DNA of 64,000 bases from Anolis carolinensis (lineage: Eukaryota): the NCBI RefSeq assembly GCF_035594765.1, contig NW_026943821.1, positions 2,041,105 through 2,105,104 of the forward strand. The letters are read 5' to 3'. Made by a program: the position numbers and the translations under genes. The notes under the pieces are model-generated. The model was not told the origin of the DNA, did not search any database, and saw only the letters and a list, made by a program, of their open reading frames with translations. Shown here one piece after another: positions 7,537-46,969 of the stretch. Each line of letters opens with the position of its first letter. Position 1 is the first letter of the stretch.

Positions 7537-7591
7537 ATGCAGATCGTACTTTCTGTTGCCGTGGTGCTCGTGGCACTCTCTGTCGTGGCAG
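7537..7591 (+). CDS. APOC1: Apolipoprotein C-I, coding exon 1 (signal peptide)
   Basis: ATG at 7537 reads MQIVLSVAVVLVALSVVA+G, a hydrophobic signal peptide. Phase-1 donor GTGAGA at 7592. Acceptor-like TTTTCAG at 7500. Confidence 0.9.
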
Positions 7592-8197
7592 GTGAGACCT
7601 AAACACAACTGTTGTATTTATTATTATTATTATTATTATTATTATTATTATTATTATTATTATTATTATTATATCGTAACTGTGGATAGGGGATCGGTGG
7701 TGACGGAGGCGCTATTGAATGAATTATATTCAATTTTTCCATCCAAAGCTCTAACTATAAAGTCATATAATATGAAAAACGCATCAAGCCAACCTAAGTG
7801 TTGCAATCCTCAGGTGAAACTTTTGCAAAGGCTGCTTTTTCCCATATTGTGCCGTCATCTCTGGTTTGGCCAGCTTTGGTAGTTTTGCAATATATCTCTG
7901 GGTCGCCGCACCTTTTTGCTCCCCAAAAAAGATACACCCCCAGTTTGCAAGGCTCTCCGAAACCCATTACAGCAGCCTTTCCCAGTTGGACATGTCCCAG
8001 CAGGCCTGGACCTTCCCAGTATCTTCCTCCCAGCTTTCATTCCTTTCTCCTTTTTTACTTTTTCATTCCTTTCTTCATCCCGGTTTCCCCAGGGGAAAAA
8101 AAAAACTTTTTGTGGCGCATCCATTCTGAAGAAAGTATGCTGTTTGCCACTTGAACTGCAATGGCTCAATGCTATAGAAAAAATGCTATAGAAAAAA

Positions 8198-8635
8198 GTT
8201 GTCGTTTTATAAGGTTTTTAGCCATCTCTGCCAAACTACAACTCCCAGGATCCTGTAATTGCACTCAAAGAATCCTGGGAGTTGTAGTTTTATAAGGTTT
8301 TTAGCCATCTCTGCCAAACTCCAACTCCCAGGATCCCGTAATTGCACTCAAAGAATCCTGGGAGTTGTAGTTTTATAAGGTTTTTAGCCATCTCTGCCAA
8401 ACTACAACTCCCAGGATCCTGTAATTGCACTCAAAGAATCCCGGGAGTTGTAGTTTTATAAGGTCTTTAGCCATGTCCGCCAAACTACAGCTCCCAGGAT
8501 CCCATAGCACTGAGCCACAGCAGTTCAAGTGGTGTCAAACTGTGTTTCATTCGGCAGCGTAATTGCACTCAAAGAATCCCGGTAGTTGTAGTTTTATAAG
8601 GTCTTTAGCCATCTCTGCCAAACTACAACTCCCAT
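8198..8635. repeat. 83-bp tandem repeat in APOC1 intron
   Basis: Units start at 8281, 8364 and 8447. Each carries inverted GGGAGTTGTAGTTT / AAACTACAACTCCC. Confidence 0.85.
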
Positions 8636-8801
8636 GAGCCTGGGCAATGTAGGCGCATCCTCCCCAGTAAGTATAGAAATGTATGCAAGCAGGAGATGCT
8701 CCGAAGTTCACAGACATGACTTTTTCTCTCCTTCGACATCTTCCAGGATGCTGGGAGTTGTAGTCCAAAGAGTGCCCAGCTGCTTCTTTGTCTTGCTCTA
8801 G

Positions 8802-8955
8802 GTACTGATGAAACCCCAGTTGCAAACGAACCCAGTTTGTCTCAGAAACTGGAGAAATTCAAGCAGGAAGTCCAGACTTTTGTGGACCGCGTCGGGGAGG
8901 AAACCAAGGAGACTCTCCATGACATCCGTCACAGTGAATTCGGCAACAGAACCCG
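8802..8955 (+). CDS. APOC1: Apolipoprotein C-I, coding exon 2
   Basis: Acceptor CTCTAG|, then GTDETPVANEPSLSQKLEKFKQEVQTFVDRVGEETKETLHDIRHSEFGNRT(R), an amphipathic helix matching ApoC-I. Phase-2 donor GTGAGT at 8956. Confidence 0.93.
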
Positions 8956-9203
8956 GTGAGTCGCCACAGAATCCCATGCAGAGTTGGACTGCAAGTCCCA
9001 GAATCCCTTCGCCTGTCAAGGGGATGCGGTTGGAACCCTGCTTTAAGCAATGAGATGGAAATTCCTGGGAGTTGTTTTCTAATCCTTTGGGCAGAGAAGG
9101 GGAAATAGCTTGGGGGAACTATAACTCGAGTATATACAGTAAATAAAGTGTTGTTGTTGTTGTTGTTGTTGTTATTCCTCTGACTCTTTCTTGCCCTCGA
9201 AAG

Positions 9204-43799: not shown

Positions 43800-44520
43800 C
43801 GGCAGAGTTTTGTGGGGAAGGAGTTTCCAAGCTCATTCATGGCTATGATGTGCCTAGATTTGAATGGCGACTATGTTGAGAAGTGGTATTTGGGTCTGGC
43901 TTTCACCTGCATATGGTAAATGTTTTCTCCTATACGTTTTGAGGACACAAGTGGCAGAGTTTTGTGGGGAAGGAGTTGCCAAGCTCATTCATCGCTATGA
44001 TAAGTGCCTAGATTTGGATGACAACTATGTTGAGAAGTGGTATTTGGGTCTGGCTTTCAACTGCATATGGTAAATGTTTTCTCCTATACTTTGTTCATTT
44101 TTACAGTAGAGTCTCACTTATCCAACATAAACGGGCCGGCAGAACGTTGGATAAGCGAATATGTTGGATAGTAAGGAAGGATTAAGGAAAAGCCTATTAA
44201 ACATCAAATTAGGTTATGATTTTACACATTAAGCACCAAAACATCATGTTATTCAACAAATTGGACAGAAAAAGTAGTTCGATATGCAGTAATGCTATGT
44301 AGTAATTACTTTATTTATGAATTTAGCACCAAAATATCACGATGTATTGAAGACATTGACTACAAAAATGCATTGGATAATCCAGAATGTTGGATAAGTG
44401 AAACTCTACTGTACTAATAAAATTACATTAATTGAGGCACCAGTAGGTTGAATGTTTTTGAATCTTTACATAAAACTAATGTAATTCCAAAACGTAATCT
44501 ACTTTCTGGATAACCCTCGC
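43800..44520 (+). mobile_element. Mariner 3' fragments, duplicated, with MITE insertion
   Basis: KLIHRYDKCLDLDDNYVEK mariner C-terminus, present twice. TIR-like ...CTTTCTGGATAACCCTCG near 44518. Confidence 0.7.
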
Positions 44521-44949
44521 ATTAATATTGTTAATATTGTTAATATTATCAATATTGTTACAGTAGAGTCTCACTTATCCAACATTCTGGATTATCCAAA
44601 CCATCTTTGTAGTCAATGTTTTCAATATATTGTGATATTTTGGTAAATACAGTAATTACTGCATAGCATTACTGTGTATTGAACTACCTTTTCTGTCAAA
44701 TTTGTTGTACAACATAATGTTTTGGTGCTTAATTTGTAAAATCATAACCTAATTAGATGTTTAATAGGCTTTTCCTTAATCCCTCCTTACTATCCAACAT
44801 ATTCGCTTATCCAACGTTCTTCTGGCCTGTTTACGTTGGATAAGCGAGACTCTACTGTAATATTAATCATACAAGAGTTGTAGTCCAGCATTGGTAGTCC
44901 ATCATATTGTTGCTGCTGATGTTGCTGTTGCTATTGCTGTTATTGTTTT

Positions 44950-45705
44950 ATTGTATGACACAGCAAACAAGATAGATATGCTGGATTTCGTATCACAAAA
45001 TCACAAGTCGAACACTTCCCAAGTGCCTAGGACTGTGTGATGTATTTTCGGATCATGCGTGCCGATCCCAGTCGGGTGGCCTTTTGCAGTTGGCAGATCA
45101 TACTTTTGTCAATGCCTATTGTTTCCAAATGCCGGCTAAGATCTTTTGGCACAGCACCTAGTGTGCCCATCACCACCGGGACCACCTGCACTGGTTTCTG
45201 CCAGAGTCTTTGAAGTTCAGTCTTGAGGTCCTGAAAGCGGCTGAGTTTTTCCTGTTGTTTTTCGTCAATGCGACTGTCACCTGGGATGGCGACATCAATG
45301 ATCCAAACCTTTATTTTCCACAACTGTGATGTCTGGTGTGTTGTGTTCCAGAACTTTGTCAGTCTGGATTCAAAAGTCCCACAGTATCTTTGCGTGCTCA
45401 TTTTCCAATACTTTTGCAGGTTTGTGATCCCACCAGTTCTTTGCTGCTGACAGGTGGTACTTGAGGCTGTTTGGTTGTGCATTTAAGTAAATCAGATCTA
45501 ATTTGCCAAATAGTCACTGTTGAATGTTTTTTAGGTTGAATGTTTTTATGATGAATGTTTTCTATTGTGGAATGATATTTTAAATTGTAAGTCGCTCAGA
45601 GCACTCTGGTGGAGAGCGACTAATTAAGAAATAAAGTGAAGTGAAATAAGAAAGTGAAGTGAATAAGTTCCAATGAATCATTTGGGCCACATAGTTGTGC
45701 CTCTG
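44950..45705 (-). mobile_element. R4-clade LINE 3' fragment with short insert
   Basis: ORF 45027-45482 is the endonuclease. Insert at 45465-45663. Confidence 0.85.
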
Positions 45706-45874
45706 TTATTATTGTTGTTGTTGTTATTTGGAAGGCCACATAGGCTGAATTCAGCTGCATCCCTTGGATTTGGTCCTTTTAAAGTCCAGAGTGAAACCAG
45801 AGCAGAAGCTCACTTTGGGCAATACGGATACGGATGGAAACGCCTAGCAGGAGGCAGCTGTTCTGCAAAATGCC

Positions 45875-46969
45875 CTAGAAGCCTCCGGAATAGGTGGTTT
45901 CGGTGCTTTCGGACCAGGTGGACTCCCTCCGGAGGGCCGAGCCCTGCCTGCTATACCTGGCCACGAACCCGTGATTGACGCAGCCCAGCTTTTGGAGCAG
46001 CTCCAGGTACCGGTGCTGGAACTTGACGCCCATGAAGGCGTAGAGGAGCGGGTTGAGGCAGCAGTGGAAGAAGCCCAAGGCGGTGGCCACCACTTCGGCC
46101 ACCTCCAGCCTCTCCTGCCAAGCGCAGTCCAGTTTGAGGAAAGTGGTGGCGAACTGGATTGAATGGTACGGCAGCCAGCAGAGGAAGAAGGCGCCCACCA
46201 CGGCCAAGATGACCCGCATGGCCTTGTGCTTTCGGAAACCCTTGGACAGCAACAGGGTGAAGACGATGTGGGCGTAGCAGTAGCCCATGGCCAGCAAGGG
46301 CAGGAAGAAGGTGCCCACTTGGTTGAAGAGGCTCAGGCCCACTTTCCACTGCGTGGCCGAATCCGGCGGGAAGACCAGCGAGCAGGAGGTGGACTTTTGG
46401 CGTGAGTCATACTCGGCAGACAGGTAGACAAAGTCCGGCACGGTGAGGAGGAGGCACGCGACCCAGACGGCCACGGCGGTGAGGTGGACGGCGGAGGCCT
46501 TGCTGCGCCTGTACATGCGGACGACACAGACAATGGAGAGGTAGCGGTCCAGGCTGATGCAGACCAAGAAGAAGATGCTGGCGAAGAAGTTGATCTTGAA
46601 GGCACCGCCCACCACGCGGCACAGGAAGGTGCCGAAGACCCATCCGCGGGCCTCCTGGACGGCCCAAAAAGGGAGGGTCAGCACCAGGAGGATGTCGGCC
46701 ACGGCCAGGTTGAAGAGGAAGACGTCCGTCCCGGCCAGAGCCTCCTTGGCACGCAGCAAGACCGCGATGACCATCCCGTTGCCCCACAAGCCTAAGAGGC
46801 AGATCAAGCTGTAGAAAGCGGGCAGGAAGCTGCCAGAGAAGCCCTGGGTCGCGTTGGAGTTGCAAACGGAGGAGGACGAGCAGCAGGCGTCGGTCCAGTT
46901 GTCGTAATCGTAATAGCCGTCGGAGGAGTTGCCGACTAAGTCAAAGAGGTCCCCACTGGTTAAGACCAT
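45875..46969 (-). CDS. CXCR3: C-X-C chemokine receptor 3
   Basis: GLWGNG, LAVADILLVLTLPFWAV, CISLDRYLSIV, LPLLAMGYCYAHI, CWLPYH, HCCLNPLLYAFMGVKF, C-terminus RRESTWSESTETTYSGGF. Kozak GCCATGG at 46969. An acceptor TTTCAG| at 46985 implies an upstream exon, so the true start may lie further 5'. Confidence 0.92.
   Translation of the reverse strand: MVLTSGDLFDLVGNSSDGYYDYDNWTDACCSSSSVCNSNATQGFSGSFLPAFYSLICLLGLWGNGMVIAVLLRAKEALAGTDVFLFNLAVADILLVLTLPFWAVQEARGWVFGTFLCRVVGGAFKINFFASIFFLVCISLDRYLSIVCVVRMYRRSKASAVHLTAVAVWVACLLLTVPDFVYLSAEYDSRQKSTSCSLVFPPDSATQWKVGLSLFNQVGTFFLPLLAMGYCYAHIVFTLLLSKGFRKHKAMRVILAVVGAFFLCWLPYHSIQFATTFLKLDCAWQERLEVAEVVATALGFFHCCLNPLLYAFMGVKFQHRYLELLQKLGCVNHGFVARYSRQGSALRRESTWSESTETTYSGGF

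Follow-up and report, generated by a model that had tools for sequence, protein, structure and literature searches.

Adjacent APOC1, APOC2, trypsinogen, and CXCR3 genes in Anolis carolinensis as a probable relic of an older vertebrate neighborhood

In the 64,000-nt stretch of Anolis carolinensis DNA analyzed here (the window), five genes follow one another in the order APOC1 (+), APOC2 (+), trypsinogen (+), CXCR3b (-), CXCR3a (-). We put at about two in three the probability that this adjacency is a relic of descent, later broken up in mammals, among unrelated and independently working genes; the notion of a functional unit is rejected. The block reveals no new gene, mechanism, or system.

RESULTS

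Five intact genes in one block. The order APOC1-APOC2-trypsinogen-CXCR3-like-CXCR3 proposed in an initial annotation, and the intactness of the genes, were confirmed by exon structures, Pfam matches, and intron phases; all five have open frames, introns of the GT-AG type, and phases that fit (Table 1).

TABLE 1 Genes, assembly gaps, and repeat features of the block, in window coordinates
Feature	Coordinates	Strand	Description
APOC1	7537..9279	+	Exons 7537-7591, 8802-8955, 9204-9279; 94 codons; signal peptide (hydrophobic N terminus); one terminal stop; GT-AG; phases fit
APOC2	16677..22048	+	Exons 16677-16728, 20068-20227, 21958-22048; 100 codons; phases fit; intron 1 contains gap 1
Assembly gap 1	17286..17421		Within APOC2 intron 1; no coding exon touched
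Tandem array, 166- to 167-bp unit, with assembly gap 2 (23905-24038)	23515..24481		Intergenic, APOC2 to trypsinogen
Trypsinogen	26489..36218	+	Exons 26489-26528, 29423-29597, 32446-32705, 34456-34592, 36069-36218; 253 codons; splice sites and phases fit
Broken partial APOC2 copy and satellite copy	38070..39404	+	Second half of exon 2 and start of intron 2 (38070-38388), then intron 2 satellite copy (38749-39404)
CXCR3b (RefSeq "CXCR3-2-like")	39526..41623	-	Exons 41623-41579, 40554-39526; 357 codons; Pfam 7tm_1
CXCR3a (mammalian-type CXCR3)	45875..46969 (read 46969-45875)	-	Single coding exon; 364 codons; Pfam 7tm_1

APOC1 and APOC2 are predicted to encode small secreted proteins of the lipoprotein surface. 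In an exon-by-exon search, exon 2 of APOC1 matched positions 1 to 43 of the Pfam ApoC-I profile (PF04691; 29.1 bits) and exon 3 matched positions 43 to 61 (26.7 bits). The gene shows 83 to 88% identity to the APOC1 of Anolis sagrei and to the A. carolinensis RefSeq APOC1, and a squamate APOC1 profile recovers APOC1 from fishes, amphibians, marsupials, and eutherian-like sequences. Exon 3 of APOC2 covers positions 49 to 76 of the Apo-CII profile (PF05355), the C-terminal lipase-activating part, at 24.4 bits, over the cutoff; exon 2 covers positions 4 to 49 at 19.2 bits, a score under the whole-protein cutoff when this exon is scored alone. The A. sagrei orthologue carries the Apo-CII annotation, and collinearity with this annotated gene was used to locate the signal-peptide exon. 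A broken copy of APOC2 lies beyond the trypsinogen, where 38189-38388 is 79% identical to 20170-20367 and the exon-like part has an in-frame stop; A. sagrei also has the adjoining satellite copy (38857-39400 in the window).

The predicted product of the third gene is a digestive trypsinogen with enteropeptidase activation at DDDK↓I. Exons 2, 3, and 5 match the Pfam Trypsin profile (PF00089), and exon 2 contains an activation peptide of the enteropeptidase type, YEDDDK↓IIGG. The His57/Asp102/Ser195 triad and Asp189 are present (AAHC in exon 2, DNDFMLIKL in exon 3, and KDSCQ-GDSGGP across exons 4 and 5). The top solved matches of exons 2, 3, and 4 are all trypsins, with no kallikrein, chymotrypsin, or elastase among them; salmon trypsins lead for exons 2 and 3, only slightly above mammalian trypsins.

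The last two genes, predicted chemokine receptors of the CXCR3 family, are arranged head to tail, 4.3 kb apart. CXCR3a carries DRY (SLDRYL) and NPxxY-type (NPLLY) motifs and is 90% identical to the single-exon gene of A. sagrei. Among solved structures, human CXCR3 scores best against it (354 bits), followed by CCR7 (236 bits); by this margin, the anole gene is assigned as the mammalian-type CXCR3. CXCR3b matches A. carolinensis RefSeq XP_003229345.2 at 100% over exon 1 and 99.4% over exon 2, with CXCR3 as its best solved relative (220 bits). In a quick tree, it groups with the turtle, amphibian, sturgeon, and teleost cxcr3.2 genes in one clade (SH-aLRT, 100), apart from CXCR3a and CXCR5, and the branching inside this clade tracks the species tree. 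Relatives are named CXCR3-2 or CXCR3-2-like in the source annotations. By this tree, anole CXCR3b is orthologous to fish cxcr3.2. The E/DRY motif of CXCR3b reads ERY in anoles and the gecko, DRY in turtles and fishes, and NRY in Xenopus; ERY is a common functional variant.

Continuity of the block across two assembly gaps. With the start of APOC2 at 16677, gap 1 is intragenic, which corrects the earlier picture of a gap between genes. The flanks of gap 1 are collinear with the contiguous A. sagrei sequence, in which locus positions 25041-25128 correspond to window positions 17186-17272 and the locus from 25257 corresponds to the window from ~17724. Both sides of gap 2 consist of the identical repeat unit in identical orientation. 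The loci fetched from A. sagrei, an independent assembly that contains no N here, keep the gene order across both gaps.

Conservation among squamates. The block is neither an oddity of one anole nor a misjoin: it is whole in A. sagrei and partly present in Podarcis and a gecko. In A. sagrei (GCA_037176765.1, CM073884.1), CXCR3a lies at 81.397 Mb, CXCR3b at 81.404-81.412 Mb, trypsin from 81.419 Mb, APOC2 at 81.434-81.437 Mb, and APOC1 at 81.444-81.452 Mb, with the relative orientation of the window and collinear sequence. Podarcis has CXCR3a, CXCR3b, and trypsin (-) inside 22 kb. In the gecko Heteronotia, a single chromosome carries APOC1 (46.700-46.707 Mb), trypsin (46.789-46.794 Mb), CXCR3b (46.799-46.804 Mb), and CXCR3a (from 46.814 Mb) in the order and orientation of the window, with APOC1 less than 90 kb from the CXCR3a-CXCR3b-trypsinogen group (~82 kb from APOC1 to trypsin). 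Orthologous trypsinogen exons in Podarcis and Heteronotia show 74 to 88% identity. Geckos and other squamates split roughly 200 million years ago, and the CXCR3a-CXCR3b-trypsinogen adjacency with APOC1 nearby dates to the squamate ancestor. The tight packing of all five genes is documented only in squamates.

Linkage beyond squamates. In 7 of the 7 informative species, namely all those where both genes could be placed, APOC1 and CXCR3b lie on one contig. Among further squamates, these are Elgaria (contig of 35,915,906 bp) and Python (contig of 690,895 bp). The two genes also lie on one 634,666-bp scaffold in the softshell turtle Pelodiscus and under the same contig code in the axolotl (Ambystoma); for these four species, the linkage is at the level of the contig. 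In the beluga sturgeon, Huso huso, apoc1 and cxcr3.2 are found on CM072699.1 (12.5 Mb) as KAK6469747 and KAK6469754; these protein accessions are 7 apart, and by this numbering the distance is ~7 annotated genes. In zebrafish, where the evidence is at the chromosome level only, cxcr3.1-3 (PMC4348563) and apo genes including apoe (PMC7431520) have been placed on chromosome 16. The linkage found in early-split lineages is that of the APOC1-CXCR3b pair, in squamates, turtle, salamander, and sturgeon, joined by zebrafish through these papers.

Outside squamates, the five-gene order and adjacency were not found within the 10-kb flanks of the species examined. In Malaclemys, Xenopus tropicalis, Huso, and Syngnathus, the 10-kb flanks of CXCR3b contain no trypsin exon, a reach too short to exclude a looser adjacency; over the same distance, there is no CXCR3a in Malaclemys or Xenopus and no APOC in Huso or Syngnathus. 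The initial annotation had zebrafish apoc, cxcr3, and trypsin genes on one chromosome; the papers cited above place apo and cxcr3 genes together, and for the trypsinogens, what is on record is a position by tomm40 in teleosts.

DISCUSSION

Taken together, the block shared among squamates, the shared contigs, and the zebrafish and teleost papers are best read as traces of an old bony-vertebrate APOC/CXCR3 neighborhood that was broken in mammals; on this best reading, the APOC-CXCR3 part is as old as the bony-vertebrate ancestor or older. That ancestor would have held an APOE/APOC cluster, one or more trypsinogen genes, and a CXCR3a/b pair in one neighborhood. On the mammalian line, CXCR3b would then have been lost, CXCR3a would have ended up on the X chromosome, and no trypsinogen would have been left beside APOC2; this trypsinogen lineage may have been lost in mammals or may be the one of the TRB locus. 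The tight packing in squamates may represent a condensation of looser ancestral linkage. In human, APOC1 and APOC2 are located at 19q13 and CXCR3 is located at Xq13; which gene moved, and in which direction the change went, would follow by parsimony from the bony vertebrates compared. The initial annotation had credited the lizard with keeping an old bony-vertebrate neighborhood, and this view is supported in part: for APOC-CXCR3, through the shared contigs and zebrafish chromosome 16, with tight packing of the trypsinogen beside CXCR3b seen in squamates.

Alternatively, only a loose, chromosome-scale APOC-CXCR3 linkage would be old, and the tight block, above all the trypsinogen, would stem from a rearrangement on the squamate stem or a duplicative trypsinogen insertion. 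We regard this course of events as unlikely, if a serious contender. Squamates alone have trypsin at less than 10 kb from CXCR3b, and the turtle, frog, sturgeon, and pipefish examined do not, so the placement of the trypsinogen could be a squamate novelty; however, a 10-kb flank cannot exclude a trypsinogen in larger genomes, and the tomm40 neighborhood already houses teleost trypsinogens. The broken APOC2 copy indicates that local duplication reshaped the interval in Anolis, and the block is several-fold looser in the gecko, with its ~82 kb between APOC1 and trypsin, whereas turtle APOC1 and CXCR3b are at most 635 kb apart and the sturgeon genes are near neighbors by annotated gene count.

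It is very improbable that common or interlocked regulation (for example, insulated subdomains or shared enhancers) keeps the genes together, with selection against breakage. Conservation of the order reaches back to the split of geckos from other squamates, but the gene functions are unrelated, as are the expression sites in other species; members of the block are dispersed or lost in mammals and birds, and the spacing differs several-fold among species. Furthermore, a strict CTCF consensus pattern has 0 exact matches in the window, against 0.04 expected by chance. The need for insulation among liver, pancreas, and leukocyte genes that had been suggested is speculation; nevertheless, the block offers a small, defined test case for the regulatory separation of such genes a few kilobases apart. 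Finally, a misjoin at either N gap inside the block, an artifact that would join unlinked genes and that the initial annotation had named as fatal to its proposal, is close to refuted, given that gap 1 lies inside one gene with collinear flanks, that gap 2 lies inside a single tandem array, and that gap-free A. sagrei has all five genes with order and orientation unchanged, with the Heteronotia assembly giving the same order.

A preserved APOC-CXCR3 neighborhood, which we favor, would explain the earlier finding of "poor synteny" of the CXCR3 loci of fish with those of mammals: the ancestral CXCR3a/b pair lay beside APOC genes, and the mammalian gene was displaced. It also provides a positional anchor for naming CXCR3 paralogues in reptiles, amphibians, and fish, as well as trypsinogen lineages. 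A deeper origin is possible, although the odds are against it: the block could be a surviving piece of a linkage older than both genome duplications of vertebrates, one that combined an exchangeable-apolipoprotein cluster, an S1 protease, and a CXCR3/CXCR5-type receptor. The human sister copy would be 11q23.3, where APOA1/C3/A4/A5 are followed by TMPRSS4/13 and then by CXCR5. If so, the APOE/C and APOA clusters were duplicated jointly with the receptor genes CXCR3 and CXCR5, and mammalian CXCR3 would have left that paralogon late to reach the X.

Comparison with known loci. The human APOE-APOC1-APOC4-APOC2 cluster at 19q13.32 resembles the anole block in the upstream position of APOC1 relative to APOC2, in their common strand, and in the small size and three coding exons of both genes. 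Unlike the human cluster, which includes APOC4, the A. sagrei annotation calls no APOC4-like gene between APOC1 and APOC2, and APOE is absent from the 7.5 kb upstream of APOC1, all of the window on that side. The genes 3' of anole APOC2 are the trypsinogen and two CXCR3 genes; in human, that position is occupied by CLPTM1.

The trypsinogen shares its enzyme family, five-exon structure, and DDDK activation peptide with mammalian PRSS1/2. Those genes lie within the TRB locus at 7q34, whereas the anole gene is solitary, between APOC2 and CXCR3b. TOMM40 adjoins APOE-APOC1 at human 19q13.32. In teleosts, prss59-type trypsinogens lie between lipeb (hsl) and tomm40 (PMC9985337; PMC10256766), in what is the notothenioid AFGP/TLP locus (PMC9985337; PMC10256766; PMC13670615), so that pancreatic-type trypsinogens occur in a neighborhood equivalent to 19q13. 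The teleost genes form tandem arrays, in contrast to the solitary anole gene, and the likeness is one of position; the texts on this locus mention no apoc or cxcr3 neighbors.

The CXCR3 pair has the closest counterpart. Xu et al. (2014; PMC4052464) described an ancestral CXCR3a/CXCR3b tandem, with CXCR3b lost in mammals and both genes lost in birds; the tandem and the mammalian loss, which the initial annotation had put forward for a second CXCR3 and which holds for CXCR3b, were thus already published. The text of that paper names no apolipoprotein or trypsin neighbors of CXCR3. The anole genes fit the published locus exactly, as two linked paralogues of which the a-type corresponds to mammalian CXCR3 and the b-type to fish cxcr3.2. 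Whereas that work placed the pair "potentially in reptiles" and noted poor synteny with the mammalian locus, here a lizard is shown to have the pair, which is tied to APOC1.

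Five intact genes make up the block

The block was initially described as five intact genes in the order APOC1, APOC2, trypsinogen, CXCR3b (a receptor of the fish cxcr3.2 type), and CXCR3a (the mammalian-type CXCR3). The exon structures, splice sites, phases, and open frames all agree with this description: every intron has GT-AG boundaries with fitting phases, and no frame contains an internal stop. Homology searches were run with each exon separately, with no joined spliced model. The last two exons of APOC1 together cover positions 1 to 61 of the Pfam ApoC-I profile, and the signal-peptide exon of APOC2 was located through collinearity with the annotated APOC2 of Anolis sagrei. 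No further host genes were recognized in the flanks of the block (positions 1 to 7500 and 47000 to 64000 of the window).

The trypsinogen carries the DDDK/IIGG activation site, the catalytic triad, and Asp189. Because the top solved-structure matches of its exons are all true trypsins and the DDDK site is present, identification of the protease as a kallikrein was ruled out. In the solved-structure ranking, exons 2 and 3 place salmon trypsins slightly above mammalian ones.

The CXCR3b open reading frame (39529-40689, minus strand) is 99% identical to A. carolinensis XP_003229345.2, and its next relatives are proteins annotated as “C-X-C chemokine receptor type 3-2-like” from other squamates, turtles, amphibians, and fishes. 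Among solved relatives, it scores 220 bits against CXCR3 versus 176 bits against CXCR2. In a quick maximum-likelihood tree, anole CXCR3b forms a clade with 100% support with the cxcr3.2 genes of turtles, amphibians, sturgeon, paddlefish, and teleosts, which stands apart from the CXCR3a and CXCR5 groups. The anole CXCR3b branch is long (0.51 versus 0.24 in Podarcis). Helix 3 of CXCR3b retains the DRY motif in turtles, axolotl, sturgeon, teleosts, and a shark; the gecko and the two anoles have ERY at this site, and Xenopus tropicalis has NRY.

Genes of the block in the anole window and their counterparts in other squamates
Sequence	Feature	Position	Strand	Remarks
Window	APOC1	7537-7591 / 8802-8955 / 9204-9279	+	94 codons, signal peptide, Pfam ApoC-I
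Window	APOC2	16677-16728 / 20068-20227 / 21958-22048	+	100 codons, Pfam Apo-CII
Window	Trypsinogen	26489-36218, five exons	+	253 codons
Window	Broken partial APOC2 copy	38070-38388, then intron-2 satellite to 39404		Between trypsinogen and CXCR3b
Window	CXCR3b	41623-41579 / 40554-39526	-	357 codons
Window	CXCR3a	46969-45875	-	Human CXCR3 354 bits, next receptor 236 bits
A. sagrei (GCA_037176765.1, CM073884.1)	CXCR3a	81,397,257-81,398,366	+	
A. sagrei (CM073884.1)	CXCR3b	81,404,039-81,411,845	+	
A. sagrei (CM073884.1)	Trypsin	from 81,419,069	-	
A. sagrei (CM073884.1)	APOC2	81,433,667-81,436,900	-	
A. sagrei (CM073884.1)	APOC1	81,443,667-81,451,778	-	
Podarcis raffonei (CM049757.1)	CXCR3a, CXCR3b, trypsin	within 22 kb	- (trypsin)	
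Heteronotia binoei (CM063341.1)	APOC1	46,700,276-46,707,028	+	
H. binoei (CM063341.1)	Trypsin	end 46,793,658	+	
H. binoei (CM063341.1)	CXCR3b	46,799,208-46,804,213	-	
H. binoei (CM063341.1)	CXCR3a	from 46,814,213	-	

The arrangement is shared by other squamates

The presence of the block in other squamates was borne out, with the full order recovered in A. sagrei and part of it in Podarcis and Heteronotia. The A. sagrei layout mirrors that of the window, so that the two agree in gene order and relative orientation over ∼54 kb, and the sequence is collinear from CXCR3a through the last trypsin exon. The trypsin exons of Podarcis raffonei show 74 to 84% identity. Order and orientation in the gecko Heteronotia also match the anole and, since the gecko lineage split off first among squamates, the arrangement can be traced to their common ancestor. 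In Elgaria and Python, too, APOC1 and CXCR3b are on a single contig, of 35,915,906 bp in the former and 690,895 bp in the latter.

Two of the five N runs in the window fall inside the block (17286-17421 and 23905-24038), and a misjoin at either one could have created the adjacency artificially. This reading was rejected as very unlikely. The first gap lies within intron 1 of APOC2, not between genes, and contiguous A. sagrei DNA (the fetched locus contains no N) is collinear with window positions 217 to 20671, a span that takes in the two flanks of this gap. The second lies in the APOC2-trypsinogen spacer, in the middle of a tandem array with a 166- to 167-bp unit that continues in unchanged orientation from 23515-23904 on the left to 24039-24481 on the right; it looks like an unresolved repeat copy number, not a scaffold join. 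The identical gene order in A. sagrei and Heteronotia likewise speaks against a misjoin.

Repeats and local duplication

The broken APOC2 copy comprises the latter half of exon 2, interrupted by an in-frame stop, and then the start of intron 2; its segment 38189-38388 is 79% identical to positions 20170-20367. The satellite part of this interval is common to A. sagrei; in Podarcis and Heteronotia, the corresponding interval showed no APOC2-like exon. The location of this copy beyond the trypsinogen indicates that the interval was reshaped by local duplication.

Several repeat families were observed in and around the block. A family based on a 49-bp unit, either a satellite or SINE derived, occupies APOC1 intron 1 (8254-8640), APOC2 intron 2 (20365-21854), and the spacer before CXCR3b (38749-39404), recurs at ∼30453-30535 and ∼14730-14852, and is present in A. 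sagrei introns too. Just downstream of the trypsinogen, a 366-codon open frame (36499-37599, minus strand) is built on a 21-residue (63-bp) tandem unit. The identical unit forms the long leader of a mariner-like ORF (56666-58777, minus strand), which gives the window at least two occurrences of the repeat, one of them with no transposase domain. LINE-type reverse-transcriptase fragments were seen in intron 3 of the trypsinogen gene (33427-34083, minus strand) and on either side of the block (2750-6268, 49035-49733, and 52922-54001).

Linkage of APOC1 and CXCR3b beyond squamates

A word search with the anole APOC1 exon matched only A. sagrei, and a search with the A. sagrei APOC1 protein matched only squamates. 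An exhaustive search with a squamate APOC1 profile yielded 54 relatives, named from cluster look-ups. The softshell turtle Pelodiscus carries APOC1 on a 634,666-bp scaffold, equal in length to that of its CXCR3b orthologue. In the axolotl, a shared contig code places both genes on one 1.556-Gb contig, which is weak evidence of linkage. In the beluga sturgeon Huso huso, cxcr3.2 (KAK6469747) belongs to a three-gene CXCR3 cluster and maps to 11.07 Mb on chromosome CM072699.1 (12.5 Mb); apoc1 (KAK6469754) maps to a contig of equal length, seven protein accessions away, a numbering that probably reflects position. Altogether, APOC1 and CXCR3b share a contig in seven of the seven species with both genes placed in one assembly; an estimate based on genome sizes puts the probability of chance co-occurrence on each of the two scaffolds shorter than 1 Mb at well under 0.1%.

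The sturgeon cluster (CM072699.1, 11,062,366-11,083,490) consists of an a-like gene (+), cxcr3.2 (+), and a second a-like gene (-) within 20 kb; in contrast to the anole genes, both a-like genes are split by an intron in the receptor body. The squamate APOC1 profile also matches (E value, 1e-8) annotated “apolipoprotein C-I-like” proteins of the kiwis Apteryx rowi and A. mantelli, in conflict with the statement that APOC1 was lost in birds (PMC7431520). The text and supplements of Lovell et al. on genes missing in birds mention no APOC, APOE, or CXCR3.

Placement of the trypsinogen

The tight packing of five genes, in which the trypsinogen separates APOC2 from CXCR3b, is documented in squamates only. 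No trypsin exon was found within 10 kb of CXCR3b in Malaclemys, Xenopus tropicalis, Huso, or Syngnathus, and no CXCR3a within the same distance in Malaclemys or X. tropicalis. The X. tropicalis CXCR3b maps to ∼109.52 Mb on CM004449.2. In Syngnathus typhle (CM107673.1, ∼13.06 Mb), two further 7TM receptor genes lie within 10 kb after cxcr3.2; no gene was called in the 10 kb upstream.

In humans, TOMM40 directly adjoins APOE-APOC1. Percomorph prss59-type trypsinogens sit between lipeb and tomm40 (PMC9985337, PMC10256766, PMC13670615). Zebrafish cxcr3.1-3 form a tandem on chromosome 16 (PMC4348563), where one scenario also puts apoa1, apoa2, and apoe (PMC7431520). From these apo/cxcr3 and trypsinogen/tomm40 placements, it follows that each pair of the three families is linked somewhere outside tetrapods. 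An ancestral membership of the trypsinogen in the neighborhood is plausible. The initial annotation had tentatively put the zebrafish apoc, cxcr3, and trypsin genes on one chromosome; the cited placements agree with this for cxcr3.1-3 and, in the one scenario, for apoa1, apoa2, and apoe, and no literature linking prss59 with chromosome 16 and cxcr3.1 was found. The squamate TRB paper does not mention trypsinogens.

Probable linkage by descent among unrelated genes

The block would be a case of linkage by descent among genes with unrelated functions. There is no indication of joint regulation. Spacing differs several-fold across species, and mammals and birds have dispersed or lost members. Putative insulation between the genes, proposed initially as a need, is reasonable biology; a strict CTCF consensus pattern had zero exact matches in the window (0.04 expected by chance).

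The proposal that an old neighborhood was broken in mammals is partly supported. Its APOC-CXCR3 part is well supported by the shared contigs and published work; the five-gene packing is on record for squamates only. No description of APOC-CXCR3 linkage was found in searchable papers, and the text of Xu et al. (2014) names no apolipoprotein or trypsin neighbor (PMC4052464). The same study reports linkage of CXCR3a with CXCR3b in the ancestor of teleostomians, that fish and mammalian CXCR3 loci show poor synteny, and that birds lost both CXCR3 genes and mammals lost CXCR3b (PMC4052464), so that the loss of a second CXCR3 in mammals, also noted initially, was already published. All of its genes are annotated in RefSeq. 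The block amounts to a relic of conserved synteny of an ordinary kind and of modest interest.
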